Source: Blepharisma stoltei ATCC 30299 (Eukaryota; Protista; Ciliophora). From it: a stretch of DNA of 64,000 bases. A program made the translations under genes and the position numbers. Location of the stretch: the NCBI GenBank assembly GCA_965603825.1, contig CBFDEM010000060.1:558001-622000 (forward strand), read 5' to 3'. The notes below the pieces were generated by a model. That model did not search any database. It was not told where the DNA came from and saw only the letters and a program-made list of their open reading frames with translations. Positions 6,472 to 51,674 of this stretch are shown here, piece after piece (within the stretch, counting starts at the first letter, position 1; each line of letters opens with the position of its first letter).

Positions 6472-8723
6472 TTAAAGAGTTTCTTTCCCTTTGCTTGTTC
6501 TTACTCTCCTTGACTTAATCAGAAGAGCAATGTAGCGAATTAGTATGCAGAAAATCATAAGGACAAATCCAATGAAAAATGAGATTATCATTGGTATAGC
6601 TGGGGCTAAATTATCCCCACATTCAGGAGTATAAGTATGAGGAATATAAGGGACATAATCTGTTTTTAAAGAATAAGTAAATGGATAGTCTTCCTTCTTG
6701 GTCATAGCACCCATCAATTGAAATTAAAAACGTTGTTTGCAAAGCAGCTCCACTTGTTGGCTGTATATCTACAGACCCATCGCAGGTGGTCCCATTGTTC
6801 ACATTTACTATAAATGATGATAATGAGTTTCCTGAAGACTCAGTGATGGTAAAATTGAATTTATAAGAACTTCCTGGAAGAAGGAATTTGGTGGGATAGA
6901 AATTGTTTGCTAATTATCAGGAAAAATATTTATTGCAATCAGTTGATCCTGAAACAAATGGAACTTGAAGTGATGGAGCTGCCTCAATATTGATACAGAG
7001 TTTTTGTGCCCAAAGACGTTTGTTACTTTAAAAGTAACCATTAGTGAAGAGCCAACTTTGCTAGTAAATAGAAGTCTTGTGTCACAGGCACAGTCATATA
7101 TGGTCGTATTAAAGTCTGTATGGTTATCTAAACAATTATAAAAAGAGCCATCACTATTGAGATTAAGAACTATGCTTTACCAACAGTTTGGCATTACAAG
7201 CAATGTGCTTCATCTAAAATAGTGCAGGAGTTTCATTGGTAGTATCGTATGTCGCACATTTAGAGTCGCATTCAGAAGTAATTTTATTTATATAGCAATA
7301 ATATCAATCGTCTGGAGCACATTCATTAGTATTGCTATCAACGGTAGAGTTTCCTGGGAATTATAGTCTGGAGCAGCTGACATGTGATAAGTATCTACGC
7401 ATTAAATGCAAGTTGAGCCTGATGTAGAATTACAAGTAGCACATTGAGGCTAATACTCAACACAAGATTTATCCGTATCGAAGTATAATCCATCATCAGG
7501 TATGCAAGTATCATTAGCATATCCAGAATGTTCTGGACATTTGCAGTCAGACTCTACAAGCATATGCGTTGTATCTATACACATAAGTACCGAAATTCCA
7601 TTAGTAGTAAAATTTAACACATTTAGAATCGAATTCTGTAGTGCTGTTATTTGCATCAAAGTAAATCCGTCATCTGGAACATATTCTGATCCAGTCGATC
7701 GATACTACTTTGATACAAATGATACTTGCGTCTGAATGCGACTCTAAATGTGCGCATATGATACTATCAATGGAACTTCGTGAACTATTTTGTATAGACG
7801 AACACATATGCTAGGAGTTCCCGAATGTCCTAGTAACTCACTTTCACGGAATCAGAATGTTTTCCAGTGACGGATATTCCTTCGAAACAAATGCAACTTG
7901 TGCCGAGTGCGACTCTATATGAAACATGCAATACAAGCAATGGAACTTCCTGCACAGCTTGTGCAGAAACAACACATATGTCAGCTTCTCAGAATGCGAA
8001 AGTCCTGGTAACTCAACTCTCAATTGATCTTAAACAGCCAGATCGTCAACATAGTCTGGAAATATCGAGATTATCTGATAAAGCAGCTAGATCCTAAAAG
8101 ATTCTTGCTTTTTTTGGCTATTGCCAATTAAAATCCAAAAATACTAGTTATTACCCAAGGGGATTAGATGGCGCAGAATGATTCATGCTCTCTAGTTCGC
8201 TTCTAAACATTTTTGTAAGCTTATATCTATAACACAAAAGTTTTGCTTCTCAAATCTCGGATTTCAAAAATCCGATTTAGAGATTGCAGTTCACCATATT
8301 ATTTGTGTAAAAGACCATATAACCTCACAAGAAGGAACTCTATATAAATTCATCCTCGCCCGTAATACAAGTTCCACCATTGGTTCTAAGAACTATATTG
8401 CAATGGTCAATATCCGAATTTTTGCAACCACCTGCATCTTCAGGTATGTGATCATCTGGATAAGCGGAAGAACTACAAATTGTATCATTATAGCAATAAT
8501 CGCTATAACTTGCACTGTCTGTGCAAACACCTGTTATTTGTCTTTCGTTTTCCCACCATGATCCGTCTTTAGATGTCTCATGGTCTTTTTCTGGAAGGGT
8601 CTCATTATTTTTGGCAAGTTGATTGACTGTCTCAGAGTCGTCGACGAGCAGTTTTGAGTTATCTTAGAGCTTCCAAGAAGGCTATTTCTTTGTAATTGGA
8701 TTAAGCTCCTCAGCTATAGACAT
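6472..8723 (-). pseudogene. Heavily deleted relic of the Cys-rich/REJ/GPS receptor family, with an internal inversion
   Basis: Ordered fragments match the 28179 and 42015 genes: AEELNPI, GSWWENERQ, PEDAGGC, PDDGLYFDT, REJ pieces, YVPYIPHTYTPECGDNL, LIRYIALLIKSRR. Stops and frameshifts are present, and the signal peptide is deleted. About 7690-8030 carries repeat units on the + strand. 5' and 3' flanks match the intact paralogs. Confidence 0.85.
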
Positions 8724-9107
8724 ATTATTTTATAGGGTTCATATTACGACCGAATAAAATCGCCAATAAGGAAATTAATTTATATAAGAAAAATATATGA
8801 AATTTAAATGATCTAGATGATCTTTCTCTGTTATACCAATATTTTTGAATGAGAAACCAACTGAGCCTATCTTAAAAATTTTTGAGTTTTTTGATCTCAG
8901 CTCTTTAGAAGCCTAATTAAATGATAATAGCATTTAATGCTGCTAAAAGACTAAAAATGTAATTTTTAGACGACGTAAATGCGAGTCTGTATTCATACTT
9001 ACTAACTCTATTAAATAAGGTTACAAATTAAATATTTTTTTTTGCTTTACAAATTATTTGTAATAGTAGTTTGTTTGCTACTGTAAATTAAAAATTTTAT
9101 ATTGAAT

Positions 9108-10258: not shown

Positions 10259-10383
10259 AACATAATTTATCCAAAAATTATACTAAGTCGTTATAATTTT
10301 CGATATTTATTAAATTTTAATTTTTATGATATCCTTTAATCAAAGAAATTATTTTATTGAGACTTTTTAAAATAAAAGATTAT

Positions 10384-13300
10384 TTAAGGTTTTACTTTGC
10401 ATGTTTCAACTGGTGGATACATTTGCACAATAATATATCTCATAATCATGTAAATGGTTTGCATGACAAAAATCTCAATCAGAATCCCCCACAAGAAACT
10501 AACTGCCCAATACCCGCTCCACTCGTGGCAGAAGTCATTGCTTAGCATCACGACTCCAATGATAGATCCTATAAGAATTGAAACTCCAACAGTGACTGCA
10601 GCTGCTGTCCATACAGGCAATTTCACCCTATAAATACTAAATGCAATTATCATGAATACCTCTACAGGAATTGATACCGCGATGGCTAAAATCATATAGC
10701 CAAAGTAATCCCCTTCATAGTCATCAAACAAGGACTGGGTTGACATTTCGCTTCCGCTATCTGTGTCTTCTGACCCATAGAAAAATAGTCCTTCTAGTAG
10801 CAATTCGAAAATAATAACAGTTATCAATGTAAAAAGTCTGGTAGCTCTTGAAAACCCTGGTCTGTAATAAAGAAGTCCTATAGTTAAATGTCCTTCTATT
10901 AAACCCTGAAACTTACTATGATATTTTGGCGAATTTTGAGAGTTTTCAGGTTTGGATACATTTACAGCTTGTTCAGTTCATTCAATTTCCACTCCCCTCT
11001 TGGTCTCAGCTGCCTCTACAGGGGCATCTCCGCAGCAGCTTTCAAGATCATGGATTACTACTGGCATCGTTCCTTTGCAGGTATCGACCAAATTTCTTGA
11101 GCTTTCCCTTGGAGTATGCACAGGGGTGTTTTCAGGAACTATATCAAGCTTTCCTACACTTGTAGATCTATTTAATCTATCAATTACCACCACAACTGGA
11201 GCAAGCAGTATTCCAATAAACAGTGTCACCACAAGAATATACAATGGAGCTAAATTTTGGTCGCAGCTTGACGAGACTGTAGGTGGGACAATTGGTGGTG
11301 GAACTTCAATTGGGGTTTCTGACAGTTTATACATTGAAAAGTGATAGACTTGGAAAGTAACGATTCTTGTCTCATTATTAATTCCCACAATTTTACAATT
11401 TGTCTCGTCCCAAGTCTTATTCCCTTCATTATAATACACACAAGTCCAGTTCATATCTTTCGAGAGGTCCTTATAATAAGGTAACTGGATTAGAAATGGA
11501 TATTCTGTAGAAGAAAATGCCAAGTCTGTTTCGGCATATGTAGAAAGGGTAAAGTCTGAATAAGTCCCTGACTGTCCTAAGCTGAAAGAAGCAATGTCAG
11601 AGAAATCATTGGCAAAGCCGTGATAGTAATTAGCCCTCATGTTCATAATAATAGAAGAATCGATTGCAAGCACTTCTGGGTACTTAAAAGATCTATCGTC
11701 GTCATATTCTCTTGTGGTGTTTTCAAAGCCAGTGATAAAGTTCCTTTCTTTGTAAATCTTGGTGTCATCGGTGTTTTGGTTTCCGTTTATAGAGGATTGG
11801 GTCACTAAATCGTTTATGGTAGCTGCATTGATCCATGTGATATAGAAACTGTCGACCGCTGAAATGTATTTTTCAAAGGATTGTTCAGTGTAATTGGTTC
11901 TGTTTCCATAAGACAAATAGCCTTCTCCAAAAGTGACAATTAAATCAATACTGTCTTGGTCAGGCACAAGTGAAGAGAAAGAGGATAAAAGGCTATTTAT
12001 CCAAGAAATAAATTCCTGGTACATGCTTAAGCTCATTAAAGACGTATGATCTGCCAAAGAACTGATAGCGCCAATTACAGTTTGCAGTTCTGAGTTCGTC
12101 ATGCTAGCAATTGTCGCATAATACTGCAAGTCAGACCACATCTGAGTGAATAAAGCGCTATCAATCTCTGCGCTGGAATACAAGAGAATTGCGGATGGAA
12201 TATTGTCTGAGTCTAGTGTCATAGATTTATAGCCGTCCCAAAGCCAAGTGGAATCAAGCATTCTTCCTGTGTATTTATTAACTGTGAAATCAGAAGATTG
12301 ATAGTCTGAGCAGGTTCCTAGCTGATCACAGACATGAGCAGTAGCTCTATTTTGTCCTGATGGGAAAACAGACGACACTTCATTACTTTGGGTTGTGTAG
12401 CCGACTGTATAAGGAGTCTTATTATTACGGGAGTTCTTAAAGGTGTATAGAAGAGGGTAGTCTTCATCATCTCGGTCATAGCAACCAGATATAGAAAGCT
12501 GAAAAGTATCAATTAAAGCAGTTCCACTGGAAGGACTTACACTTGTAGAGCCTGTACAGGATGCTCCTAGGTTAATATCTACATCTAAGTCTACGCTAAA
12601 GCTGGTCGAAGCAGTTTTTACAGTCAATGTAAATACATATGAAACTCCTTCACTAAGAGAATTGGCTGGGAAATTAATTGTGGGAAGGTTGTTAGGAGAA
12701 ATCGTCACAGCAGTTCCTGATGTTTGTGTCCAGGTCAAAGTTGAGCTTGAGCTTGCAGAGACTGAGGCTGTATACGAATTAGATTGCTGATTATTTACTT
12801 TGATACCGAGCGTAGGAAGTTCTATTGAAGTTGAAGTACTCTGAGATAACACAAAAAGAGTTATAGTTGCGGAAGCAGTCCTGGTGTCTTTTGAGATGGT
12901 GCAGGTTATATCCCATTCTGCCCCTTTGGTGATTTTTGCAGAAGGAATCGTAAGTGTGCTTGAGGTTTCTGAAGAAAACAGTACACTATTATCAGCTGCC
13001 AAACACTGAGAGCCATCAGCATGGTTTAAACAGGTCCATTCATAATTTAAGGTTGAAGTAGGGTTGTCTGGGTCTTTAGAGTTTTTAGCATTAACAGTGT
13101 AGTCTTTGCTTGGGTTGACATCGCCGCTTCCTTTAGATAATTTGATATACAGAGGAGATGCAGTAGTCGTCACATACACTGTAGCGTTTCCTGATACAGT
13201 TGAGTCACCGTTAGACTGAGAAGCAATTGCCATGAAGCCATAAGTGCCGCCAGCAGGAAGAGAATTTTTAGCAATTTCTAACTTACTAGTAGCACTGACA

Positions 13301-16300
13301 GCTAGACTAGACCCAGAAAAACCAGTAGGCCCTGACACATAGGACCATTTCCAAGAAATAGAGCTCGTAGACCCTCCACAGACGTCAGTAACTTTTGCTT
13401 TTAGTTTTGTGGTGTCAGAAGTTTTGACTGATACAGAATTTCCTGAGTCAAAGGACACATTTAAGGACTCTTCAGGGGACAAAATCGTGGACACTGTCGC
13501 TGTGCTTGTGGTTGAGCTGATTCCATTTTTGATTGTCACAGTTACTGTTAAGCTTGTCTGGGTTGTCACTTTTGTCAAATAATTTCGCGTAATTGATAAG
13601 CTTGAGCCTTTTTGAGATGAAATATAAGTGGATAGGCTAGAAATTGCAGGAGAAATGGTAGAGCTCCAGGTATAGGTCATAGAAGTTCCATAGGAGCCAG
13701 TAGATTTTTCAGCGGAGTATACAATAGTAGTGGATCCGCAGCCTAAGGAGACTAGCTCTGGGCCTGATAGCTTAGCTATTGGAGCTGGATCTGATGTCAT
13801 GGTTATTTGAGTGCTAAGTGGCTGATAGTTAGTTGTGCATTGGTCTGTGGTATCTTTAACAATATAAGTGCCGTCCAAATTAATTGTGCCACTTCTCAAG
13901 GTAAAGCCAGCCCCCAGTACAATTTTCAAAGTCTTTGAGTCAGCCCAAGAACATACTGGTCCAGTTCCCATCAACAAAAGAGTATCATAGCTCAGTACTT
14001 CAGAACAAGTCGGGTCTAGACCAGTATTTATAGGAACCTTAAAGGTCACTGACACAGAAGTAAACGAAAAGCTAAAGGAAGCCCCAGTTACGTCTGAAGA
14101 CGCTAAATAATTCTTGCACAAAATGCATTTGCTATTCACCAAAGAGTATCCATTATTACAAAGACAGCTATTTGAAGCCTGGTCATACGAAGAATTCTGT
14201 GTGCATTTACAAGCTTTGTTATTGAACTCAGCATTGGTTATACATGCTAAGCAATTTCCATTATCTTCGTCACAAGAAGAGCATAAACTGCTACAGACTG
14301 CGGTGCATGCGTTATTGGAGTTTAAGGCAAAACCGGTGTCACATTGACAAATATTGTTGGAGTTAAGAGAAGCGTGTTTATTGCAAGTTAAACATTTAGA
14401 AGCTGAGGTACAGGTTGCACAGCATGTAGGACACTGATAACATTTGCCATTTAATGGGAAATAGCTGTCAATGCATGAGCAAGTTGGGTAATATTTGGAT
14501 TTAGGTACAGAATTTTCTGCTTTTTTAGCATTAGGGACACAGTCAATGCAGCTGGTAGATGATGCACAGGTCAAGCATTGGTTTGAGCAAGCCACACAAG
14601 TTTCAGCTTGATAATCAGTCCAAGTTCCAGATGGGCATTGGCAGACAGAAGTTCCACTGCCATCAAATCCATCCTTACACACATCACAAATCTGCCCATT
14701 TTCACTATTACAAGTATCACAAAAGCTTACATCACACGAGCATTCTCCATTATTTTGAACATACCCGGCCTGGCAAATATCGCAGATTCCTCCATCATAT
14801 TCATTGCAGCTTGCACAATTATCAACCCCACATGTGCATGTAAAAGTATTAGTAAGGATATATCCTCCTAAACACATATGGCATTCTGTTCCAGTCGTCT
14901 CAACAACAATACATTTCTCTAAAGAAGACTGTGTGCATATGCCGTCTGTATTTATCATATAGCCTTCTGCGCAGGAATTGCAGGCTACTCCATCAATTTC
15001 GATTATATTGCAGTTTGAAACGGTAGAATAAATACAGACCGAGGTAGATGTCGGCAAATAGTCTTTATCACAAGTAGAACATGTGTTGCCTGCGTAGCCT
15101 TTTTCACAAATATAACAGGTATTAGCATCAGTCACTGTTATGCAGTGAGGTATTGAAGAGACAATACAGCTTTTAGATGAAGTTGGCAAGTAGCCTATAT
15201 CGCAGCTTTCACAAGTAGGTGTGATATAGCCGTTGTCGCATATGTTACAAGATTGCCCATTATTGCTGTCAAGAATTAAACAATGAGATAACGAAGATAC
15301 AACGCAATTTGTATTTACGTCTGGTAAATAGCCTATATCGCAATTTTGACAACTCCTGCTTACATAGCCAGTTTCGCATTGCTGGCAATTTTCTGGATCA
15401 GTAGCTATAATGCAGTGGGTCATTAACGATTGAATACATTGAGTGTTTGTGTCCCTTACATAGCCAACATCGCATTCTGTGCATGTTAGACCTGCATAGC
15501 CTGTTTCGCATTGATGGCAAGTGTTAGGGTCATTGGCTTTAAGAGTAGTGCAATGGGATAGAGAACTCAAAAGACAAAGAGAGCTTTGGTCACGCAAGTA
15601 GCCTTTAGAACAGTCAGCACATTTAGATCCAGAATAGCCTGTGCTGCATGAGAAGCAAGAATTTGGATCGCTGCTATAAAGAGTAGCGCAATGAGTTAAT
15701 GACGATTGAAGACATAAAGAATTCTGGTCATGTACATATCCTTGAGCACAATCAGTACAAGTCGTCCCAGCATAGCCAACTTCACAGAGTTTGCAAGAAT
15801 TTGCATTTCCGCTTACCAGAGTTGTACAATGAGTAATTGTTGACGAAATACATTTACCAGTTTCATCAAGCAAATAGTTTGTAAAACAAATTGAACAATG
15901 TGTAGCATCAGTAGCTGTTAGACAGTATATTAATGAAGAAGCGATACACAAATCTGCTGTATTTCTAACGTATCCAGTATCGCAGAAATCACAAGTGTAT
16001 CCTGAATATCCTGTTTCGCAAGAGAAGCAGAGTGTAGGATTACTAATTATATTGCAATGGGCTATTGATCCTTCTGCACATTTGCCATTATAGTCAATCA
16101 TGTATCCCTGAGCGCAGGCCGAACAAGTAGTTCCAGTATAGCCAGTTTCACAGGCTTTGCAGACATTTCCATTCCCGGTTTCAAGGGTAGTGCAATGGGT
16201 AATTGTTGTCGAAATACATAGGCCAGTTTCGTCAGGCAAATAATTTGAATCACAAACTGAGCAACGTGTAGTATCGGCTGCTACTTTGCAATTGAGTAAA

Positions 16301-25300: not shown

Positions 25301-25839
25301 AGAGCGTCACTGCATTTTTTACAGCTTGAGCCGTCGACATAGTAGCCTGAGTTACATTCTGTGCAAGTAGCAGTGTCTGAACAAGTATGGCAGTTAGGAA
25401 TTAGTGAGCTGCATGACACACAGTCTAAATAATAGTGATCTGAGCACGTGTCACAGGTATTAGTAGAAGCAACAACGGCACAATAGTCTAAAGAGGACTC
25501 TGTGCAGCCTCCTTTATTGTCTGGCTTGCGAGTATCTGGATTTACACAAGTTTCACAAAGGTTTGACAATGCACAAGTTAGACAGCCCCCACTTCCATTC
25601 ATGCAGAAACCTTGGAGATTCCTTTGATTTTGGCTTTCTGAAGTGTTATTTGATGCTTTTGATTCGTTAAAAGTTGAGTTGCTTTGAATTAATTGATTGA
25701 ATTGCCCAAAGTCATGGAAGGGTGGATTTCAATCAATGTTAGAGTTTTTGAAGCTTTCATGAGTCACTGAATTTGTTTCCTTTGAGACAGAGACTCTTAA
25801 TGTTGAGAAGATGAGGAAAAGTATTCCAGCCACAGACAT
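10384..25839 (-). CDS. Giant Cys-rich repeat / REJ-like / GAIN-GPS / multi-TM polycystin-1-like surface receptor, 5151 aa
   Basis: ATG 25839 (signal peptide MSVAGILFLIFSTLRVSVS). Eight listed ORFs share this frame and are separated only by TGA, with no TAA/TAG in the gaps. Ten TGA in total: 25729, 24988, 23257, 22570, 22477, 21427, 21334, 20284, 19144, 10978. CxxC repeats, REJ-like SKDPD/YEWTC/DEDYPLLYTF, GPS WTCVYY..WDETNC..HFSMY, about 5 TM, TAA at 10386-10384. Confidence 0.88.
18200..22830 (-). repeat. Higher-order coding repeat, about 4 units of 1140-1143 bp built from roughly 44-aa Cys-rich subunits
   Basis: Homologous TGA-ACT-GGA-GAG-AAG sites at 19144, 20284, 21427 and 22570 (spacings 1140, 1143, 1143). 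The translated units are near-identical. Boundaries approximate. Confidence 0.9.
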
Positions 25840-42014: not shown

Positions 42015-45000
42015 TTAAATAGTATCTTTCCCTTTTCTTGTTCCTGCTCTCCTTGACTTGATCAGAAGAGCAATGTAGCGAATGAGCATATAGAAAATCT
42101 GAACAATAAAGATTTCCATAAGAATTCCCCATAAGAAGCTTTCAGCCCAGTAGCCACTCCAATTGTGACAGAAGTCAACGTTAAGTATCACAATCCCAAT
42201 GACTGATCCAATAAGAACTGCAATGCCTAGTAATAAAGCCAAAATATTCACTACTCTTCTTCCTTTCTCCATGCAAGATATCAATGCACATTCTAAGTGT
42301 ACTCCTATAAGGACTGCGAGGACTGTATATCCGAAATAGTTTCCTTCATAATTGTCAAATATTGATTGAGTTGACATTTCTCTGCCTTTATCAGTGTCTT
42401 CAAATCCTGAGAACAAGCAGCCCTCTACTAATAACTCGAAAATAATAACGGCAAGTAAAATGAATGCTCTTCTCCATCTTGGCAAATCTTTTCTATAATA
42501 AACCAGCCCAAATGTCAAATGACCTTCCAAAAGCATACGGAAATTCCCTTTAGCTCTATATTCATTATATAGTTCTTTTGGATAAAAGTCAACTTCTGGG
42601 CCTTTTTTAGTATGTCCTGAAGGGCCTAAATTATTTACCTCTCTTTCTGTATTTTCTGCAGCAAGTTGAGCTTTTTCAGGGTCACTTTTCACTTCTTCAG
42701 TCTGCACTAAATCCATTTTCACCTTCGTAAATGGCTCAGATTGCTCTGAAAGGGCTTCGACCTTCAAAGGCTCCACGTCTTCTTTGTCCATTTCATCAAC
42801 CTTCAAAGGCTCTACAGGATTATTTGCAAGTTCAGGAACTGGAGTCACTTTTTTATCTTCTTTTTCTGAGGCTTTATTGTGGGATTTATCCATAAAGACT
42901 GTGATTATCATAAGGACGAATCCAATGAAAAATGAGACTATCATTATGATAGTTGGGGCTAAATTATCCCCGCATTCCGGAGTATAAGTAGGAGGAATGT
43001 AAGGGACAAAATCTGTTTCTGAGAGCTTAAATAAGGAGAAATGGGTAAGTGAAACTGTAATTGTATCAACTCCTTGGCTAGTAATGACGCAACCATTTAC
43101 GTCCCAAGTTGAAGTTGTAGTGTCATAATACACACAAGAAAGGCCCCTAGTCGCATTTTTATAATAAGGAATAGTTACTGTGACTGGATATCTGTCATCA
43201 TTGAAGGATTGATATTGCTCATCTGTAGCAGTATATTGATAATCTTGATATCTACCGCTAGTTGTGTAGCTTACAGAGAACCAAGGTGCATAGCCGTCAG
43301 TAATATTATAAGTATTAGCTTTGAAGTTTGTGACTTCAGTCTCATCAATTGGGATTTTATTAGGGAATGTTACATCAATAAACCCAAAGGTCTGAGAAGT
43401 TTTACTGATTGAATCAGGGAAATTTCTGACTTTTCCAAATTGGATAGAGGAAGTTGAATCTGAAGCTGGAAGTGAGCTCTGGCCTGGAAGGTCATCAACT
43501 GTAATATAAGTCATAAAAGTAGTTAAGAAATTATCTGCTGCCAGCAAATAAGTCTCAAATGGCATTGTTGCGTCAGCATGTTTGCTGCCGAAATCTAAGT
43601 ATCCGTTAGAAAGCGATACGATGATTTGCAAAATGCTACTTGCGTCAGTATTAATAGCAATTGAGTTGGCTGTAACTAAGTTATTGAGCCAAGTCATGAA
43701 ATTTTCATAAAGAGTGACTGTCATTGAATCAGTTTGGCTTGATAAAGCCAAAACTGCAGCCGCGAAACTCTTAAATAGTGAGACTGATACTGAATCTTGG
43801 CTTGCTGCATATGATTGCAAGTCACTCCACATCTGTGAGAAAAGAGTATTATCTATCGTTGCAGAGGAAGCAATCAATGAGATTTCGCTTGGAATATTGT
43901 CAGGGTCAAGAGTTGCAGAGGCATACATAGCAGCGTAGTCTGTGTCTTCTAGTTTTCTCTTTAGAGAATCGACTGTGATTTTGCTTTGATAAGTTGAGCA
44001 GCTTAAAAGCTGATCACATGCCTTGATTTTAATTGTATTACTGTTAGGGAATAAGCCAGTTGATAAGCTGCTGTCTTGAGTGGCTCCAAGGACATATTCC
44101 ACACTATTCCAGACATCATCATAAGAATAAGTTAAAGGATAGTCTTGTCCATCTTGGTCATAACACCCAGCAATTGAAATTACAAACGTTGTTTGCAAAG
44201 CAGTTCCACTTGTTGGCTGTATGTCTACAGATCCATCACAGGTAGCCCCACTGTTTATATTTACTATAATTGATGATGATAAAGAGTTTCCTGAAGTCTC
44301 AGTGATTGTAAAGCTGAATTTATAAGAACTACCTTGGATAAAGGTATTTGGTGGGATAGAAATTGTTGGCAAGTTATCAGGAGAAATCTTTATTGCAGAA
44401 CTATCACAAACCCATTTAATTTTAGAGCCAGATGATATAGTAGCTGTAGGAGATAAGGTATAAGAAGATCCTGCTGAGATTTTGGCTGAAGAATAAGGAA
44501 TTTCTATTGAAGAAGAGGAGGCAACTGTTGCAGCTGAGACTTGCACAGTGACTGTGGCCGATGCATTTCTACTTCCTGCACTTATTAATAGGGTTATATC
44601 GTAGCTTGCTCCTGGTATCATTTTTCCTGAAGGAATTGAGAGGCTTGAGGTGGTAGCAGAAGAGACAAGGTCTTTATTATCAGTTCCAAGACAAGAAGTT
44701 GCATTCACTGTATATAAACAGCTCCATTGGTAACTTAAAAGAGTAGAAGAGCTATCTGGATCTGAAGAACGATCTCCATTAATAGAAAAGCCGTTCTTGG
44801 ATGCCACAGTGCAGCTGGATTTGGAAAGTTTTATTTTGAGAGGAGATGAAGTCACTGTGATGGTAAGCAAAGAATATCCGGATACAGATGACTCTGTAGA
44901 ACTTTGGCTAGTTGCAGTTGCATTGAATTGGTATGAGTATCCACTTGGAAGCATATTTTTGTTGATAACAAGCTTGTTTTGCTGCTTGGATGCAGAAAGG

Positions 45001-48000
45001 ATTGCTGAGGAATCAATTGTAGGAGCCCCTGCTAAGGCAACATAGCTCCATTTATAAGTCACTGAAGAGACATCTCCACAGAATGTAGCAACTGAAGCCT
45101 TGTAAGTTCTTGAGTCTGAAGCTTTAATTGTATCAGTTGATCCTGAATCAAATACAACTTGAAGTGAAGGAGCTGCCTTAATTGCTGTAGTCATTGATGC
45201 AGAGTTTGTGCCGCCAAAGGCGTTTGTTACTTTAAGAGTAACCACTAGTGTAGAGTCAACGTTGCTTGTAAATAGAAGTTTTGTGATTGCTAAAGATGCT
45301 GAGGATTGCTTTTCAATATAACTAGTGAGACCTGAGTTCTGTGGAGTACTGGTGGCTGACCAAGTGTATATCATAGGGTTATTCAAGTTTCCTGTTGATT
45401 TTGAACCTGAGTACTGAAGAGCTGTGTTTCCACAATCTAAAGAATAGCTTGCTGGTCCGGAAATGACAGCATTAGGAGTAGGATCGGCTGTTTGCCTTAC
45501 AGTAATATATAGCGGAGTATAATTTAAGCTGCAAGTTCCTTCCTTTTTAGCAATATTTGTTCCCAACAAATATAGTTTTTCAACTTTAATAGTAAAGCCT
45601 TTTCCTAATTGAATTTTCAGCTTATTGGATCCATCCCATGAGCAACTGGCTCCAGTTCCTAGTTTGCTAATGCTTTGCCAATCAATGGTATTTGAGCATG
45701 CTGCACTAACTGTAGTATCAACACCTACACTGAAAGTAACTGTAATGGTAGAGAAATATTCATCGAAATAGGCGTCAGTCACATCTGACAATACGAAATA
45801 ATTCTTGCAAGCTATACATTTATTGCTAACTAAGGTATATCCACCATTACAAACACACGACTGTGAATTTGAGTCATAGCTTGAATTTGCAGTGCAAGAA
45901 CACTTGCTCTTTACTAATTCTGCATTAGTTACACAAGCTGTGCAAGATTCTCCATCATCTTCGCTGCATGTAGTACATACTTGGTTGCAGGTAGCTACAC
46001 ATTTAGTATCTTTTTGGTAAAATCCACTAACACAGCTGCAAGTGCCATCTGAATTTGCTGAAGCATGCTTTATGCAAGTATTGCAAGTATCTACTGATTT
46101 AGTGCAGATGGAACAATTGATCTTACAAGCCTGACATGTATTTCCAGATTTTCCATATCCATTACTACAGCTGCATAAGTTAGTATTATCAACTGCTGCA
46201 TTATCCACACAAGAGCTGCAGGACCAATTAGACGAGCATTTCTTACAAAGTCCTGGGCAGGCTGTGCATACTGCATTTAAAGAGTAATAATAGTCATTGC
46301 ATGTACAAACACTTGTATCTAAATCAAAGCTTGCATTTTCGTCATTACAAGTACAAACTCCATCAGTGAGAGTCATATGGCTTGCGTCTAAACATTCTTC
46401 ACAATAGGTAGCTTCATTAACGCATTCTTTGCAAGGAGCATCACAGGCTTCGCATGAATCTGAATCAGTATAATAGAAGCTAGAATCGCATTGGTCACAT
46501 GTAGATTCATCAACACACTCAGCGCAATTATCCATACACTTAGTGCAGCTTCCTGGATGGTCATAATATCCTCTGACGCAGACACAGTCATTAACGGTTG
46601 TATCAAACTCTGTATGGTCATCTAAACAATTATCACAAGAGCCATCACTATCCAATGAATTGTAGACTCCACTGCATTTTGTGCAATAAGTTTCAGAGCT
46701 GCACCATAAGCAAGGTTCAACACAAGGAGAAGTAGCTGTATTAGAACTGAAATAGTAAGTATCATCAGCAACACATACCTCTGTACCACTATCAAATGTA
46801 GAATGAGTTGGACAGTCGCAGTCAGGAATTCCAAGCATATGAGTTGTATCTGTGCAAGCTGTGCAGGAAGTTCCATCTGTAGTGTCACATGTTGCACATT
46901 TAGGGTCGCATTCAGCACATGTGGTAGCATCACTAAAGTAATATCCGTCATCTGGAACACAATCTGATCCTGTGAGAGTTGAGTGCTCAGGACATTCACA
47001 GTCTGGAGCCGCTGACGTATGAGTTGTATCTGTGCAAGCTGTGCAAGAAGTTCCATCGCTAGCGTCACATGTATCACATTTAGGGTCGCATTCAGCACAT
47101 GTGGTAGCATCACTAAAGTAATATCCGTCATCTGGAACACAAACTGATTCATCGAAAGTTGAGTGACTTGGGCAAGCGCAGTCAGGTACTCCAAGCATAT
47201 GAGTTGTATCTGTACAAGCTGTGCAGGAAGTTCCATCGCTAGTGTCACATGTATCACATTTAGGGTCGCATTCAGCACATGTGGTAGCATCACTAAAGTA
47301 ATATCCGTCATCTGGAACACAATCTGATCCTGTGAGAGTTGAGTGCTCAGGACATTCGCAGTCTGGAGCCGCTGACATATGAGTTGTATCTGCACAAACT
47401 GTGCAGACAGTTCCATCGCTAGTGTCACATGTATCACATTTAGGGTCGCATTCAGCACATGTGGTAGCATCACTAAAGTAATATCCGTTATCTGGAACAC
47501 AATCTGATCCTGTGAGAGTTGAGTGCTCAGGGCATTCGCAGTCTGGAGCCGCTGACGTATGAGTTGTATCGGTACAAGCTGTGCAAGAAGTTCCATCGCT
47601 AGTGTCACATGTATCACATTTAGGGTCGCATTCAGCACATGTGGTAGCATCACTAAAGTAATATCCGTTATCTGGAACACAAACTGATCCTGTGAGAGTT
47701 GAGTGATCAGGACATTCACAGTCTGGAGCCGCTGACGTATGAGTTGTATCTGTACAAGCTGTGCAAGAAGTTCCATCGGTAGTGTCACATGTATCACATT
47801 TAGGGTCGCATTCAGCACATGTGGTAGCATCACTAAAGTAATATCCGTCATCTGGAACACAATCTGATCCTGTGAGAGTTGAGTGCTCAGGACATTCGCA
47901 GTCTGGAGCCGCTGACATATGAGTTGTATCTGCACAAACTGTGCAGACAGTTCCATCGGTAGTGTCACATGTATCACATTTAGGGTCACATTCAGCACAT

Positions 48001-51000
48001 GTGGTAGCATCACTAAAGTAATATCCGTCATCTGGAACACAATCTGATCCTGTGAGAGTTGAGTGATCAGGACATTCACAGTCTGGAGCTGCTGACGTAT
48101 GAGTTGTATCGGTACAAGCTGTGCAGGAAGTTCCATCGCTAGTGTCACATGTATCACACTTAGGGTCGCATTCTGCACATGTGGTAGCATCACTAAAGTA
48201 ATATCCGTCATCTGGAACGCAAACTGATTCATCGAAAGTTGAGTGCTCAGGGCATTCGCAGTCTGGAGCCGCTAACATATGAGTTGCATCTTTGCAAGCT
48301 GTGCAGGAAGTTCCATCGGTAGTGTCACATGTCTCACATTTAGGGTCGCATTCAGCACATGTGGTAGCATCACTAAAGTAATATCCGTTATCTGGAACAC
48401 AATCTGATCCTGTGAGAGTTGAGTGCTCAGGACATTCGCAGTCTGGAGCCGCTGACGTATGAGTTGTATCTGTGCAAGCTGTGCAGACAGTTCCATCGCT
48501 AGTGTCACATGTATCACATTTAGGGTCGCATTCAGCACATGTAGTAGCATCACTAAAGTAATATCCGTCATCTGGAACACAATCTGATCCTGTGAGAGTT
48601 GAGTGCTCAGGACATTCGCAGTCTGGAGCCGCTGACGTATGAGTTGTATCTGTGCAAGCTGTGCAGACAGTTCCATCGCTAGTGTCACATGTATCACATT
48701 TAGGGTCGCATTCAGCACATGTGGTAGCATCACTAAAGTAATATCCGTCATCTGGAACACAAACTGATCCTGTGAGAGCTGAGTGATCAGGGCATTCGCA
48801 GTCTGGAGCCGCTGACATATGAGTTGTATCTGTACAAGCTGTGCAGACAGTTCCATCGCTAGTGTCACATGTATCACATTTAGGGTCGCATTCAGCACAT
48901 GTAGTAGCATCACTAAAGTAATATCCGTCATCTGGAACACAATCTGATCCTGTGAGAGTTGAGTGCTCAGGGCATTCGCAGTCTGGAGCCGCTGACGTAT
49001 GAGTTGTATCTGTGCAAGCTGTGCAGACAGTTCCATCGCTAGTGTCACATGTATCACACTTAGGGTCGCATTCAGCACATGTGGTAGCATCACTAAAGTA
49101 ATATCCGTCATCTGGAACACAATCTGATCCTGTGAGAGTTGAGTGCTCAGGACATTCGCAGTCTGGAGCCGCTGACGTATGAGTTGTATCTGTGCAAGCT
49201 GTGCAGACAGTTCCATCGCTAGTGTCACATGTATCACATTTAGGGTCGCATTCAGCACATGTGGTAGCATCACTAAAGTAATATCCGTTATCTGGAACAC
49301 AAACTGATCCTGTGAGAGCTGAGTGATCAGGGCATTCGCAGTCTGGAGCCGCTGACATATGAGTTGTATCTGTACAAGCTGTGCAGACAGTTCCATCGCT
49401 AGTGTCACATGTATCACATTTAGGGTCGCATTCAGCACATGTGGTAGCATCACTAAAGTAATATCCGTTATCTGGAACACAATCTGATCCTGTGAGAGTT
49501 GAGTGATCAGGGCATTCGCAGTCTGGAGCCGCTGACGTATGAGTTGTATCTGTACAAGCTGTGCAGACAGTTCCATCGCTAGTGTCACATGTATCACATT
49601 TAGGGTCGCATTCAGCACATGTGGTAGCATCACTAAAGTAATATCCGTCATCTGGAACACAATCTGATCCTGTGAGAGTTGAGTGCTCAGGACATTCGCA
49701 GTCTGGAGCCGCTGACGTATGAGTTGTATCTGTGCAAGCTGTGCAGACAGTTCCATCGCTAGTGTCACATGTATCACATTTAGGGTCGCATTCAGCACAT
49801 GTGGTAGCATCACTAAAGTAATATCCGGCATCTGGAACACAATCTGATCCTGTGAGAGTTGAGTGATCAGGACATTCGCAGTCTGGAGCCGCTGACATAT
49901 GAGTTGTATCTGTACAAGTTGTGCAGACAGTTCCATCGCTAGTGTCACATGTATCACACTTAGGGTCGCATTCAGCACATGTGGTAGCATCACTAAAGTA
50001 ATATCCGTTATCTGGAACACAAACTGATCCTGTTAGAGTAGAGTGATCAGGGCATTCGCAGTCTGGAGCCGCTGACGTATGAGTTGTATCTGTGCAAGCT
50101 GTGCAGACAGTTCCATCGCTAGTGTCACATGTATCACATTTAGGGTCGCATTCAGCACATGTGGTAGCATCACTAAAGTAATATCCGTTATCTGGAACAC
50201 AAACTGATCCTGTGAGAGTTGAGTGATCAGGGCATTCGCAGTCTGGAGCCGCTGACGTATGAGTTGTATCTGTGCAAGCTGTGCAGACAGTTCCATCGCT
50301 AGTGTCACATGTATCACATTTAGGGTCGCATTCAGCACATGTGGTAGCATCACTAAAGTAATATCCGGTATCTGGAACACAAACTGATCCTGTGAGAGTT
50401 GAGTGCTCAGGACATTCGCAGTCTGGAGCCGCTGACGTATGAGTTGTATCTGTGCAAGCTGTGCAGACAGTTCCATCGCTAGTGTCACATGTATCACATT
50501 TAGGGTCGCATTCAGCACATGTGGTAGCATCACTAAAGTAATATCCGTTATCTGGAACACAAACTGATCCTGTGAGAGTTGAGTGATCAGGGCATTCGCA
50601 GTCTGGAGCCGCTGACGTATGAGTTGTATCTGTGCAAGCTGTGCAGACAGTTCCATCGCTAGTGTCACATGTATCACATTTAGGGTCGCATTCAGCACAT
50701 GTGGTAGCATCACTAAAGTAATATCCGGTATCTGGAACACAAACTGATCCTGTGAGAGTTGAGTGATCAGGGCATTCGCAGTCTGGAGCCGCTGACGTAT
50801 GAGTTGTATCTGTGCAAGCTGTGCAGACAGTTCCATCGCTAGTGTCACATGCATCACATTTAGGGTCGCATTCAGCACATGTGGTAGCATCACTAAAGTA
50901 ATATCCGTTATCTGGAACACAAACTGATCCTGTGAGAGCTGAGTGATCAGGGCATTCGCAGTCTGGAGCCGCTGACGTATGAGTTGTATCTGTACAAGCT

Positions 51001-51674
51001 GTGCAGACAGTTCCATCGCTAGTGTCACATGTATCACATTTAGGGTCGCATTCAGCACATGTGGTAGCATCACTAAAGTAATATCCGGTATCTGGAACAC
51101 AATCTGATCCTGTGAGAGTTGAGTGCTCAGGGCATTCGCAGTCTGGAGCCGCTGACATATGTGTTCCGTCTATGCATGCAGTGCAATCCGACGAACTGGT
51201 ACCGCAAGTACTGCATTTATCATCACAACAGCTTGCACCGCTACCGTGAACTGTAAATCCATCAATGCACGCAACACAAGTATCACCATCACCACTAGCA
51301 ACCATACTGCAATGCTCAATAGTCGAAGCTGTGCATCCACCTGCATCATCAGGTATGTCAGTAGCTGAATTAGTGCAAGTTTCGCACGTTGTTGCATCTT
51401 TGCAAGTTTGGCATCCACTTGCACCACCAGTGCAAGCAGCTGTTAAATATCTTTCGTTTTCCCACCAGGATCCCTCTACAGTCGTATTTTGGTCTTTTTC
51501 TGGAGCAGTTTCATTATTTTTGACAAGTTGATTGACTGCCTCAGAATCGTCGATAAGCAGTTTTGAGTGAATTTCAGAGCTTTTAAGGCTAGTTCTGGCA
51601 ATTGGATTGAGTTCTTCCGCTGTAGTTGCTCCAAGGATCAGGAGCAAAAAATAAGCAATTCCACCAGTAGGCAT
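42015..51674 (-). CDS. Cys-rich repeat / REJ-like / GAIN-GPS / multi-TM polycystin-1-like receptor, 3219 aa (paralog B)
   Basis: Same architecture as 28179..35870 and near-identical to it outside the repeat array; TAA stop. Confidence 0.9.
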   Translation of the reverse strand: MPTGGIAYFLLLILGATTAEELNPIARTSLKSSEIHSKLLIDDSEAVNQLVKNNETAPEKDQNTTVEGSWWENERYLTAACTGGASGCQTCKDATTCETCTNSATDIPDDAGGCTASTIEHCSMVASGDGDTCVACIDGFTVHGSGASCCDDKCSTCGTSSSDCTACIDGTHMSAAPDCECPEHSTLTGSDCVPDTGYYFSDATTCAECDPKCDTCDTSDGTVCTACTDTTHTSAAPDCECPDHSALTGSVCVPDNGYYFSDATTCAECDPKCDACDTSDGTVCTACTDTTHTSAAPDCECPDHSTLTGSVCVPDTGYYFSDATTCAECDPKCDTCDTSDGTVCTACTDTTHTSAAPDCECPDHSTLTGSVCVPDNGYYFSDATTCAECDPKCDTCDTSDGTVCTACTDTTHTSAAPDCECPEHSTLTGSVCVPDTGYYFSDATTCAECDPKCDTCDTSDGTVCTACTDTTHTSAAPDCECPDHSTLTGSVCVPDNGYYFSDATTCAECDPKCDTCDTSDGTVCTACTDTTHTSAAPDCECPDHSTLTGSVCVPDNGYYFSDATTCAECDPKCDTCDTSDGTVCTTCTDTTHMSAAPDCECPDHSTLTGSDCVPDAGYYFSDATTCAECDPKCDTCDTSDGTVCTACTDTTHTSAAPDCECPEHSTLTGSDCVPDDGYYFSDATTCAECDPKCDTCDTSDGTVCTACTDTTHTSAAPDCECPDHSTLTGSDCVPDNGYYFSDATTCAECDPKCDTCDTSDGTVCTACTDTTHMSAAPDCECPDHSALTGSVCVPDNGYYFSDATTCAECDPKCDTCDTSDGTVCTACTDTTHTSAAPDCECPEHSTLTGSDCVPDDGYYFSDATTCAECDPKCDTCDTSDGTVCTACTDTTHTSAAPDCECPEHSTLTGSDCVPDDGYYFSDATTCAECDPKCDTCDTSDGTVCTACTDTTHMSAAPDCECPDHSALTGSVCVPDDGYYFSDATTCAECDPKCDTCDTSDGTVCTACTDTTHTSAAPDCECPEHSTLTGSDCVPDDGYYFSDATTCAECDPKCDTCDTSDGTVCTACTDTTHTSAAPDCECPEHSTLTGSDCVPDNGYYFSDATTCAECDPKCETCDTTDGTSCTACKDATHMLAAPDCECPEHSTFDESVCVPDDGYYFSDATTCAECDPKCDTCDTSDGTSCTACTDTTHTSAAPDCECPDHSTLTGSDCVPDDGYYFSDATTCAECDPKCDTCDTTDGTVCTVCADTTHMSAAPDCECPEHSTLTGSDCVPDDGYYFSDATTCAECDPKCDTCDTTDGTSCTACTDTTHTSAAPDCECPDHSTLTGSVCVPDNGYYFSDATTCAECDPKCDTCDTSDGTSCTACTDTTHTSAAPDCECPEHSTLTGSDCVPDNGYYFSDATTCAECDPKCDTCDTSDGTVCTVCADTTHMSAAPDCECPEHSTLTGSDCVPDDGYYFSDATTCAECDPKCDTCDTSDGTSCTACTDTTHMLGVPDCACPSHSTFDESVCVPDDGYYFSDATTCAECDPKCDTCDASDGTSCTACTDTTHTSAAPDCECPEHSTLTGSDCVPDDGYYFSDATTCAECDPKCATCDTTDGTSCTACTDTTHMLGIPDCDCPTHSTFDSGTEVCVADDTYYFSSNTATSPCVEPCLWCSSETYCTKCSGVYNSLDSDGSCDNCLDDHTEFDTTVNDCVCVRGYYDHPGSCTKCMDNCAECVDESTCDQCDSSFYYTDSDSCEACDAPCKECVNEATYCEECLDASHMTLTDGVCTCNDENASFDLDTSVCTCNDYYYSLNAVCTACPGLCKKCSSNWSCSSCVDNAAVDNTNLCSCSNGYGKSGNTCQACKINCSICTKSVDTCNTCIKHASANSDGTCSCVSGFYQKDTKCVATCNQVCTTCSEDDGESCTACVTNAELVKSKCSCTANSSYDSNSQSCVCNGGYTLVSNKCIACKNYFVLSDVTDAYFDEYFSTITVTFSVGVDTTVSAACSNTIDWQSISKLGTGASCSWDGSNKLKIQLGKGFTIKVEKLYLLGTNIAKKEGTCSLNYTPLYITVRQTADPTPNAVISGPASYSLDCGNTALQYSGSKSTGNLNNPMIYTWSATSTPQNSGLTSYIEKQSSASLAITKLLFTSNVDSTLVVTLKVTNAFGGTNSASMTTAIKAAPSLQVVFDSGSTDTIKASDSRTYKASVATFCGDVSSVTYKWSYVALAGAPTIDSSAILSASKQQNKLVINKNMLPSGYSYQFNATATSQSSTESSVSGYSLLTITVTSSPLKIKLSKSSCTVASKNGFSINGDRSSDPDSSSTLLSYQWSCLYTVNATSCLGTDNKDLVSSATTSSLSIPSGKMIPGASYDITLLISAGSRNASATVTVQVSAATVASSSSIEIPYSSAKISAGSSYTLSPTATISSGSKIKWVCDSSAIKISPDNLPTISIPPNTFIQGSSYKFSFTITETSGNSLSSSIIVNINSGATCDGSVDIQPTSGTALQTTFVISIAGCYDQDGQDYPLTYSYDDVWNSVEYVLGATQDSSLSTGLFPNSNTIKIKACDQLLSCSTYQSKITVDSLKRKLEDTDYAAMYASATLDPDNIPSEISLIASSATIDNTLFSQMWSDLQSYAASQDSVSVSLFKSFAAAVLALSSQTDSMTVTLYENFMTWLNNLVTANSIAINTDASSILQIIVSLSNGYLDFGSKHADATMPFETYLLAADNFLTTFMTYITVDDLPGQSSLPASDSTSSIQFGKVRNFPDSISKTSQTFGFIDVTFPNKIPIDETEVTNFKANTYNITDGYAPWFSVSYTTSGRYQDYQYTATDEQYQSFNDDRYPVTVTIPYYKNATRGLSCVYYDTTTSTWDVNGCVITSQGVDTITVSLTHFSLFKLSETDFVPYIPPTYTPECGDNLAPTIIMIVSFFIGFVLMIITVFMDKSHNKASEKEDKKVTPVPELANNPVEPLKVDEMDKEDVEPLKVEALSEQSEPFTKVKMDLVQTEEVKSDPEKAQLAAENTEREVNNLGPSGHTKKGPEVDFYPKELYNEYRAKGNFRMLLEGHLTFGLVYYRKDLPRWRRAFILLAVIIFELLVEGCLFSGFEDTDKGREMSTQSIFDNYEGNYFGYTVLAVLIGVHLECALISCMEKGRRVVNILALLLGIAVLIGSVIGIVILNVDFCHNWSGYWAESFLWGILMEIFIVQIFYMLIRYIALLIKSRRAGTRKGKDTI
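46841..51170 (-). repeat. 180-bp (60-aa) coding tandem array, 24 copies
   Basis: gt(g/a)gtagcatcactaaagtaatatccg recurs every 180 bp from 46921 to 51061. Confidence 0.95.

Follow-up and report, generated by a model that had tools for sequence, protein, structure and literature searches.

Giant REJ-GAIN proteins of Blepharisma stoltei resemble the receptor half of polycystin-1

We analysed a window of 64,000 nucleotides of macronuclear DNA from the ciliate Blepharisma stoltei, in which UGA is decoded as tryptophan, and found on its minus strand three intact long frames (genes A, B and C) together with a single rearranged relic. In order, the product of each intact gene comprises a hydrophobic N-terminus that may serve as a signal peptide, a Cys-rich stalk, a REJ domain, a GAIN-like domain containing an H-F-S site, and five transmembrane (TM) helices. 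We consider it reasonably probable that these genes belong to a large ciliate branch of the PKD1/REJ family that has only the receptor half of polycystin-1 (PC1), and that they encode cleaved surface receptors whose membrane bundle acts on a partner. Most dominant polycystic kidney disease involves mutation of PC1, and debate continues over the role of its REJ-GAIN ectodomain and first five TM helices. The existence of a family with this receptor part and nothing else shows that such a module can exist by itself as an evolutionary unit, and probably as a functional one too.

Gene content of the locus

The initial annotation had described three intact co-oriented genes and one relic, with the order signal peptide, Cys-rich repeats, REJ-like region, helical segment, GPS-like motif, TM1, acidic loop and four further TM helices. 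Translation with UGA as tryptophan and self-BLAST upheld the gene count, and the domain order proved real. The protein lengths given there, about 1300-3900 aa, were too short, the actual range being 2563-5151 aa (Table 1). Under the standard code, gene A had appeared as eight open reading frames separated by gaps of about 110 nt, for which introns were suspected; this was ruled out, the region forming one frame of 5155 codons. The intron reading was dropped because decoding UGA as tryptophan gives a single frame with TGA codons at conserved tryptophan positions: four of them encode the Trp of a recurring G/A-W-T-G motif, where other repeats have TGG. Exact translations of genes B and C are present in NCBI/UniRef as annotated B. 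stoltei proteins. The relic was found by self-BLAST to consist of deleted and partly inverted pieces of a B/C-type gene with 66-87% identity.

Table 1. Features of the locus, with positions counted from the first nucleotide of the window
Feature	Position	Strand	Description and basis
Gene A	10387-25839	minus	5151 aa; 10 in-frame TGA; single frame with UGA=Trp
Gene A stalk	15160..25782	minus	~3500 aa of laminin-EGF-like 46-aa Cys-rich units; higher-order repeat ~1140 nt
Gene A REJ	12295..13365	minus	Pfam PF02010, E 1.5e-33, 116.6 bits
Gene A GPS site H-F-S (aa 4833-4835)	11335..11343	minus	motif and family conservation
Gene A TM1, acidic loop and TM2-TM5	10387..11262	minus	hydropathy; 36-55% identity to gene B
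Gene B	28182-35870	minus	2563 aa; no TGA; annotated protein
Gene B stalk	32950..35339	minus	~11-13 copies of 60-aa 8-Cys repeat; 38 N-x-S/T sequons
Gene B REJ (aa 1536-1922)	30105..31265	minus	Pfam PF02010, E 7.7e-34
Gene B GAIN-like domain (aa ~1923-2232)	29175..30104	minus	helical subdomain, then beta sandwich; AF2 model
Gene B GPS site H-F-S (aa 2221-2223)	29202..29210	minus	predicted site of autoproteolytic cleavage, F|S
Gene B TM1 helix (aa 2249-2283)	29022..29126	minus	hydropathy and models
Gene B acidic disordered TM1-TM2 loop	28743..29021	minus	pLDDT <50; position of PLAT in PC1; no PLAT match
Gene B pre-TM2 helices and TM2-TM5 (aa 2377-2562)	28185..28742	minus	pLDDT >90
Gene C	42018-51674	minus	3219 aa; tandem duplicate of gene B; annotated protein
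Gene C stalk	46838..51165	minus	24 copies of 60-aa repeat, 95% alike; zero N-glycosylation sequons
Gene C REJ	43941..45098	minus	Pfam PF02010, E 6.6e-34
Gene C GPS site H-F-S (aa 2878-2880)	43035..43043	minus	motif
Gene C TM1, loop and TM2-TM5	42018..42962	minus	hydropathy
Relic of B/C-type gene	6160..9006	minus	pieces of the 3' and 5' ends (the latter with its upstream region), a single internal segment, repeats in both directions
Relic 81-aa ORF	6472-6717	–	TM1 joined straight to C-terminal tail

The membrane-proximal module and polycystin-1

The region initially called REJ-like is a REJ domain in all three genes (Pfam PF02010, E 6.6e-34 to 1.5e-33), with scores far above the Pfam cut-off of 25 bits. 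In the AF2 model of gene B (mean pLDDT 81), REJ is followed by a GAIN-like domain predicted mostly at pLDDT above 90. A Foldseek search of the PDB returned GAIN structures as all of the top matches (E 2.7e-7 to 7e-4, probability 1.0), the best being BAI3 (4dlo_A, E 2.7e-7), and comparison by VIA yielded Z scores of 14.7-15.9 to GAIN crystal structures of adhesion GPCRs. The top matches in these searches comprised BAI3, BAI2, GPR110, GPR126, CELSR1, latrophilins including latrophilin-3, and CD97. The GAIN fold that had been proposed to precede TM1 is therefore borne out on the predicted structure (Foldseek E 2.7e-7; VIA Z 15-16).

The GPS motif, C..W..GC..H-F-S-x-F, lies approximately 25 residues upstream of TM1, and the consensus residues His -2, Phe -1, Ser +1 and Phe +3 are found in each of the three genes. 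Across 42 family members, we observed His at -2 in 35, Ser, Thr or Cys at +1 in 36 and Phe or Tyr at +3 in 38, and both flanking cysteines were invariant; two of the four canonical cysteines of the GPS region are present. Of the profile results anticipated in the initial annotation, the REJ match (E ~1e-33) and the absence of PLAT and PKD_channel held, whereas the Pfam GPS model gave no score on these proteins. When the family profile was searched against PDB sequences, neither PC1 nor GAIN chains were significant (best E for the GPS region 0.2-0.4), so that the links to PC1 and GAIN are made by sequence through REJ and otherwise through predicted structure. A protein-language-model look-up, taken as a source of leads only, pointed to a cluster of GPS domain-containing proteins (0.90) and a ciliate REJ cluster (0.79).

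Hydropathy and both models gave five TM helices, the chain ending about 20 residues past TM5. Genes B and C share 92% identity across their final 670 aa. Using a model of the gene B TM region only, a VIA comparison with 48,161 chains placed human PC1 first (8z6b_A residues 3068-3610, which span TM1-TM5; Z 18.0 over 191 residues aligned); the runner-up chain scored Z 6.8. The full gene B model matched the same PC1 chain at Z 18.3. The best 11 rows in Foldseek were all PC1 chains, and the best ESM Atlas cluster was PKD1L2 (PLAT 98%, GPS 95%; TM-score 0.54 over 216 residues). The earlier assignment to the first five-TM module of PC1 thus stood on predicted structure: the modelled five-helix bundle has the PC1 TM1-TM5 fold, with homology read from that structure.

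The initial annotation had further proposed that PLAT and the channel domain are missing, and our searches agree. No PLAT match was obtained with Pfam in the three proteins at E up to 0.1-1, nor in a six-frame search of the B. stoltei genome that ran without a positive control; Pfam likewise found neither PKD_channel nor 7tm_2 in these proteins, and hydropathy and models account for five TM helices.

These proteins share with the animal PKD1, PKD1L1-3 and PKDREJ a REJ domain, a GAIN/GPS domain directly before TM1 and a large modular ectodomain, and with PC1 a TM1-TM5 bundle predicted to fold alike (Z 18 against residues 3068-3610). By contrast with PC1, their TM1-TM2 loop (90-140 aa in genes A, B and C) is acidic, disordered, variable in length across the family and free of PLAT, the TM3-TM4 connection is much shorter, the TM6-TM11 channel-like domain and the TOP domain are absent, and the tail past TM5 leaves no room for the C-terminal coiled coil. 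The stalk consists of Cys-rich repeats, where the PC1 group has PKD/Ig repeats, LRR or C-lectin domains, and the ciliate GPS has two cysteines only. Adhesion GPCRs (latrophilin, BAI, CELSR, GPR56) also combine a membrane-adjacent GAIN/GPS with a very large adhesive ectodomain, and they probably share a mechanism in which autoproteolysis leaves a tethered peptide; their membrane part, however, is a class-B 7TM, and the ciliate five-TM bundle reached only Z 5.5-5.7 against such chains, compared with 18 for PC1.

The architecture is not wholly new. Ciliate GAIN domains are known from Arac et al. 2012 (PMC3321182), and sea-urchin PKD1-family proteins with fewer than 11 TM helices from PMC1934368. 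Sea-urchin SpREJ1, 2, 7, 8 and 9 keep REJ and GPS without the channel-like half, and SpREJ proteins form a multigene family with varied ectodomains (PMC1934368). Their TM helices number one in SpREJ1, 8 and 9, two in SpREJ2 and six in SpREJ7, and PLAT follows TM1 in most SpREJ and human PKD1 proteins (PMC1934368); these are animal proteins, and that paper gives no account of a free REJ-GAIN-5TM form lacking PLAT. According to the available part of Arac et al. 2012 (PMC3321182), Tetrahymena thermophila has more than eight GAIN domains with conserved GPS motifs, and Dictyostelium has GAIN as well. These proteins probably represent the same or a related protist family; in that portion of the paper they are treated for the GAIN/GPS part only, by secondary-structure pattern, with no mention of a REJ and five-TM arrangement, of its likeness to PC1 TM1-TM5 or of the missing PLAT and channel half. 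In another protist lineage, the Ectocarpus protein Esi0130_0068 (1427 aa, 6-7 predicted TM helices) combines REJ and GPS with a short multi-TM region (PMC4700764); unlike the ciliate genes it is brown-algal and male-gamete specific, and it is likened to them here by description rather than by family comparison.

Stalk diversity, selection and transcription

The paralogues were initially said to differ mainly in the type and length of the stalk, which repeat analysis supports, and sequon counts revealed that glycosylation sites differ as well. In gene A, Pfam recognised EGF_laminin (E 7.8e-15 and 4.4e-14) and DUF7630 (1.2e-8), and TRF found periods of 138 and 276, the periodicity of the open reading frames agreeing with the repeat structure. 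In gene B, TRF found a period of 180 with matches of 84-92%. Neither the 60-aa repeat nor the N-terminal head of genes B and C matched any Pfam family. Comparison of gene B with gene C gave dN/dS values of 0.24-0.72, below 1 in every region and highest in the N-terminal head. The REJ-GAIN-5TM core of 1100 aa is conserved across hundreds of homologues, and is under purifying selection.

Contigs from four runs, presumed to be RNA, cover the gene ends and leave out the 2-kb spacer between genes A and B, although contigs are no measure of expression. At the 5' end of gene A, they run past the ATG and end 43-270 nt upstream of it. Genes A and B are represented in all four runs and gene C in one of the four over the stretch examined, contigs being unsuited to deciding whether expression is exclusive.

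One alternative is that the proteins form a variable surface coat resembling ciliate immobilisation antigens or Giardia VSPs, with function residing in the repeats, each paralogue supplying a different coat and the REJ-GAIN-5TM region serving as a mere anchor. In favour of this, the Cys-rich periodic stalks differ in number and type between neighbours, with 38 sequons in the gene B stalk against none in that of gene C; the head has the top dN/dS (0.72); gene A has a weak, sub-threshold Pfam VSP match (E 3.6e-4); and the restriction of gene C contigs to a single run points the same way. We nevertheless regard a coat as unlikely. Hundreds of homologues conserve the supposed anchor, which is under purifying selection, the occurrence of genes A and B in every run fits strict mutual exclusion poorly, and homologues with leishmanolysin, lectin or laminin-G heads in place of the Cys-rich stalk point to a modular receptor. 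Moreover, the classical surface antigens of ciliates carry a GPI anchor and are not known to possess a polytopic membrane domain, and coats of this general kind are attached through GPI or a single TM helix, whereas the anchor here is a conserved five-TM domain.

It is highly improbable that the long frames are functionless, decaying or silent duplicates. The relic adjoins the genes, gene A contains 10 TGA codons and the runs have no RNA label on record, all of which could be read in that direction. However, open frames of 2563-5151 aa would not persist by chance, the TGA codons stand where tryptophan is conserved, and UGA means tryptophan in B. stoltei, dN/dS is below 1 in all regions, and the contigs end at gene borders as transcripts would.

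Family size and a proposed receptor mechanism

The family is large: we found more than 25 loci in the B. stoltei genome and 394 family matches in an exhaustive HMMER library search. The ending of 1+4 TM helices is common to most of the long library matches examined, including a protein of Stentor coeruleus, and labelled homologues among the matches came from Blepharisma, Stentor and, as one fragment, Rhodomonas. A word-index search with TM2-TM5 of a short paralogue returned Blepharisma proteins only, a result without bearing on distribution. REJ as such occurs at about 50 loci of the B. stoltei genome, with many different heads. Among the giant surface receptor families of heterotrichs this one ranks with the largest, and its heads are modular.

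Pairing in Blepharisma occurs after exposure to pheromones, and the proteins might act in this setting as receptors for cell-cell recognition during conjugation, a special case of the adhesion-receptor reading that parallels the REJ proteins of gametes. In one library match, REJ and GPS are combined with filamin repeats and a GEX2 N-terminal Ig-like domain, which fits such a role, as do precedents elsewhere. In sea urchins, REJ proteins belong to sperm and have been linked with gamete recognition and the acrosome reaction (PMC1934368), the Ectocarpus REJ and GPS multi-TM protein shows positive selection in and near REJ as well as its male-gamete specificity (PMC4700764), and REJ-like proteins lie at the male gamete apex of Cryptosporidium (bioRxiv 10.64898/2026.10.13.757955). 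Yet a repertoire of some 50 REJ loci with many heads seems to exceed the needs of a mating system, and every dN/dS value between genes B and C is below 1. A dedicated conjugation role therefore appears improbable to us.

For the reading that we prefer, we infer a GPS-cleaved surface receptor for adhesion or mechanosensing, possibly working with separate TRPP channels; of the functions initially suggested (adhesion, mechanosensing and surface antigen), all of them conjectural, surface antigen is the weakest. The protein would reside in the plasma or ciliary membrane with its stalk outward, and cleavage by the GAIN domain would fall between F and S, like that of PC1 and adhesion GPCRs, so that the giant ectodomain stays attached non-covalently to a short tethered peptide. 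Mechanical pull on the stalk, or a ligand bound to it, could then change the five-helix bundle, which would act on a partner, most plausibly a separately encoded PKD2-like (TRPP) channel controlling Ca2+ entry and, through it, contact between cells or the behaviour of cilia. The channel-like half of PC1 sits among the PC2 subunits in the solved structure of their complex; because that half is absent from the ciliate proteins, TRPP coupling here is without direct precedent. Stalks may have diversified by tandem duplication, change in repeat number, gain and loss of sequons and partial gene conversion; the REJ-GAIN-TM core remains under purifying selection. As a culturable single cell, Blepharisma lends itself to testing cleavage, location, partners and behaviour.

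We identified at least 35 separate PKD_channel (PKD2-like) loci in the B. stoltei genome, with open frames of up to 613 aa, and in none of the matches listed, which include the roughly 50 REJ loci, did a channel follow a REJ on the same strand. The family is consistent with PC1 being a fusion of a receptor module with a TRPP channel subunit. Whether the free-standing REJ-GAIN-5TM form is also the ancestral one, with animal PC1 arising by later fusion to a PKD2-like subunit and gain of PLAT, is a more doubtful matter, and we offer it tentatively. The protist receptor half and the TRPP channel would then be two gene products that assemble in the membrane, Blepharisma with its many REJ and PKD_channel loci would represent a natural split polycystin complex, and the long-disputed function of the PC1 TM1-TM5 module could be studied on its own.

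Two family members were found near PKD_channel genes, one on contig 54 (about 9 kb apart, opposite strands) and one on contig 58 (7 kb apart, in the wrong order for a fusion); both pairings were treated as chance.

Gene models and the tandem array

Three intact co-oriented receptor genes and one relic had been proposed, and the ORFs read with UGA as Trp, together with self-comparison of the window, bear this out. With standard decoding, two very long ORFs and a chain of eight ORFs are seen on the minus strand; the chain merges into the single frame of gene A when UGA is read as Trp. Four TGA codons of gene A coincide with the Trp in a G/A-W-T-G motif, a position encoded by TGG in sister repeats, and we therefore regard this gene as intact rather than broken; only its TGA-free pieces were used for database searches. 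The predicted protein size of about 1300-3900 aa was too low (lengths in the table). None of the gene models called for splicing. B. stoltei entries were the nearest protein relatives in NCBI/UniRef, which also list protein sequences identical to those of genes B and C.

Features of the window, ordered by position
Feature	Positions	Strand	Remarks
3-Hydroxyacyl-CoA dehydrogenase	319-1185	plus	E 6e-29; ordinary flanking gene
Gene adjoining the relic	3955-6087	plus	about 700 aa; no Pfam match over last 498 aa
Relic	6160-9006		scrambled copy, 66-87% identity (self-comparison)
Short ORFs (within 9102-10119)	9102-9353, 9910-10119	plus	echo parts of the protein of the gene adjoining the relic
Gene A	10387-25839	minus	5151 aa; ten in-frame TGA, UGA=Trp
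Gene B	28182-35870	minus	2563 aa
Gene C	42018-51674	minus	3219 aa
U-box protein	56459-57304	minus	E 2.9e-20; ordinary flanking gene
Open frame	60967-63999	plus	>1000 codons, hydrophobic N-terminus, continues past window end; no Pfam match in last 250 aa

Self-comparison placed genes B and C within a tandem duplication (27703-36284 versus 41495-52101, 88% identity), with spacer pieces matching as well between the two segments. Their non-repeat Cys-rich, REJ and GAIN regions are 94-96% identical (dS 0.04-0.07), whereas the N-terminal head is 69% identical (dS 0.26, dN/dS 0.72) and the loop with TM2-TM5 81-90% identical (dS 0.14-0.18); dN/dS is below 1 in all regions. Because dS in the centre is threefold to sixfold lower than at the two ends (0.14-0.26), these data suggest that gene conversion homogenised the middle of this pair of tandem paralogues. 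The relic still has both ends of the gene, the 5' end along with upstream sequence, as well as a single internal piece and repeats of either orientation; in its 81-aa ORF, TM1 is fused straight onto the C-terminal tail. The local duplication behind the receptor copies seems to have taken the gene adjoining the relic along, since the two short ORFs repeat its protein sequence.

The stretch is contained in four runs of one study, only tentatively taken to be RNA and represented by contigs alone. Within 25000-30999, the 5' end of gene A was represented in all four runs by contigs of 2.1-2.4 kb ending 43-270 nt upstream of the ATG, and B-specific contigs without differences covered 28589-29114, again in all four. 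No contig in any of the runs covered the spacer at 26110-28163, and no joints were seen in contigs over the region. One run, X2, yielded further contigs over 29260-30926, in which all 31 differences from gene B were gene C letters. Such coverage is compatible with transcription of A and B in every sample and of C in a single sample, bearing in mind that contigs give no level and that the RNA label is unproven.

Ectodomain and GPS site

All three proteins start with a hydrophobic signal-like segment, and their stalks, the Cys-rich repeat parts of the ectodomain, vary in type and length, as anticipated. A 180-nt repeat (60 aa, eight Cys) is present in 24 copies in gene C (95% identity) and in about 11-13 copies in gene B (84-92%); Pfam recognised no family in this unit. 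The stalk of gene A comprises about 3500 aa of laminin-EGF-like 46-aa units (EGF_laminin, E 7.8e-15; DUF7630, E 1.2e-8), which in turn form a larger repeating unit of about 1140 nt. Counting N-x-S/T sequons, we found 38 in the gene B repeat stalk (32950-35339), about three per unit, and zero in the roughly 1500 aa of the gene C repeat stalk (46838-51165); on this count, the homologous 60-aa stalks should differ greatly in glycosylation potential. C-terminal of the stalk lies a beta-rich region whose PKD-like match is weak in gene B (E 0.08) but reaches E 1e-9 to 2e-12 in homologues; next comes the proposed REJ-like region, which Pfam identified as REJ in C (E 6.6e-34), B (E 7.7e-34) and A (E 1.5e-33).

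For structure prediction, the C-terminal 673 residues of gene B were aligned with 41 homologues. The resulting model (mean pLDDT 81, mostly >90 apart from the loop) contains a GAIN-like region in which seven helices precede a sandwich of about thirteen strands, the last of them just ahead of TM1. Foldseek against the PDB ranked GAIN domains at the top (BAI3, E 2.7e-7; further BAI2, GPR110, CELSR1, latrophilin-1, latrophilin-3, CD97 and GPR126), and an independent all-against-all structure aligner gave Z 14.7-15.9 for the same set. The last strands of the sandwich bear the motif C..W..GC..H-F-S-x-F; across the 42 sequences, both Cys are invariant; position -2 is His in 35, +1 is Ser, Thr or Cys in 36, and +3 is Phe or Tyr in 38. 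This residue pattern is that of the autoproteolysis site of PC1 (polycystin-1) and adhesion GPCRs (PMC3321182, PMC4810088). The GPS-like motif noted before TM1 stands with respect to the modelled GAIN fold and the site residues, but none of the three proteins scored with the Pfam GPS model, and the region lacks two of the four canonical Cys. Cleavage at the predicted site is likely.

Membrane module and the channel half

Hydropathy and both structure models gave the same order: TM1 is followed by an acidic, disordered loop of roughly 90-140 aa, after which come short amphipathic helices, TM2-TM5, and a tail of about 20 residues. The 1+4 pattern recurs in most long homologues examined; conserved within it are a basic L-E-G-H-L-x-F-G motif ahead of TM2 and single invariant Gly and Trp residues. 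The decisive evidence on this module came from structure: among 48,161 PDB representatives, the full model matched PC1 best of all (8z6b_A, from the PC1/PC2 complex; Z 18.3 and rmsd 3.3 A over 184 residues, covering PC1 residues 3069-3610). A separately predicted TM-only model (pLDDT 80, pTM 0.73) matched PC1 residues 3068-3610 with Z 18.0 over 191 residues, the second-best chain scoring 6.8. The aligner cautions that helical bundles may reach Z of about 13 by chance; the PC1 match is well over this level, isolated, and covers all helices. The top 11 Foldseek rows were all PC1 chains (modest E of 0.014-0.5, probability 0.82-1.00), and the top ESM Atlas cluster was PKD1L2 (PLAT 98%, GPS 95%; TM-score 0.54). 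Human PC1 residues 3068-3610 comprise TM1, PLAT and TM2-TM5, stopping short of the channel-like TM6-TM11. Predicted structure supports the proposed likeness to the first five-TM module of PC1. For the "half-polycystin" reading as a whole, support comes from sequence in the case of REJ and from predicted structure in the case of GAIN and TM1-TM5.

The suggested lack of PLAT and the channel domain also held: Pfam found neither PLAT nor PKD_channel in proteins A, B and C or in six homologues scanned, and a six-frame genome search, run without a positive control, returned no PLAT. In the genome, PKD_channel gave at least 35 matches, none in an open frame longer than 613 aa, and REJ about 50. When coordinates were compared, no REJ among the matches listed preceded a channel match on its own strand, and these matches accordingly do not point to a canonical 11-TM PC1; receptor half and channel half look to be encoded by separate genes. 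Because two defining features of PC1, PLAT and the channel half, are missing, we file the proteins as a variant within the PKD1/REJ family.

Family, function and modular heads

The last 673 aa of gene B detected about 25-30 genome loci, often clustered (contigs 25, 37 and 56), with open frames up to 9202 aa. Members on contig 25 (326-331 kb) and contig 37 (63-121 kb) have open frames of 9202, 6696, 5879 and 4904 aa, and contig 37 has three consecutive giant genes of the family. At E <=1e-3, an exhaustive HMMER search returned 394 cluster representatives, of which 61 reached E <=1e-30; the named matches were from B. stoltei, a Blepharisma transcriptome and Stentor coeruleus (UniRef title "GPS domain-containing protein"), most others being unnamed metagenome proteins. 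Public titles read "EGF-like", "PKD/REJ-like" or "GPS domain-containing".

A 2012 report records GAIN domains in Tetrahymena (>8) and Dictyostelium (PMC3321182), and sea urchin has PKD1-family proteins with 0, 1, 2 or 6 TM (PMC1934368). In the literature searched, there was no description of a REJ-GAIN-5TM family or of its membrane domain in relation to PC1 TM1-TM5. We consider the proteins most likely to be GPS-cleaved surface receptors. In the mechanism we infer, the five-helix bundle would respond to a pull on the stalk or to binding there and pass this on, perhaps to TRPP channels encoded by other genes. A surface-coat role is less likely, as is one in mating recognition; an Ectocarpus REJ and GPS protein with 6-7 TM is male-gamete specific (PMC4700764), and REJ-like proteins mark the male gamete apex of Cryptosporidium (bioRxiv 10.64898/2026.10.13.757955).

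The family is a modular receptor scaffold. In homologues, the stalk is replaced by leishmanolysin, laminin-G or H-lectin heads, and in more distant REJ-GPS matches we saw filamin together with GEX2 Ig-like domains, FG-GAP repeats, or a tetraspanin domain alongside TSP1 repeats. The metagenome protein P0096 (2998 aa), whose cluster contains a Rhodomonas salina fragment, combines nine filamin repeats and a GEX2 N-terminal Ig-like domain with REJ, GPS and TM helices. GEX2 is a gamete-attachment factor, a role that would tie this domain of P0096 to the REJ-GPS scaffold. Another metagenome protein, P0132 (2119 aa), has REJ, TSP1 repeats and a C-terminal tetraspanin domain, which is an alternative membrane ending on the REJ scaffold.
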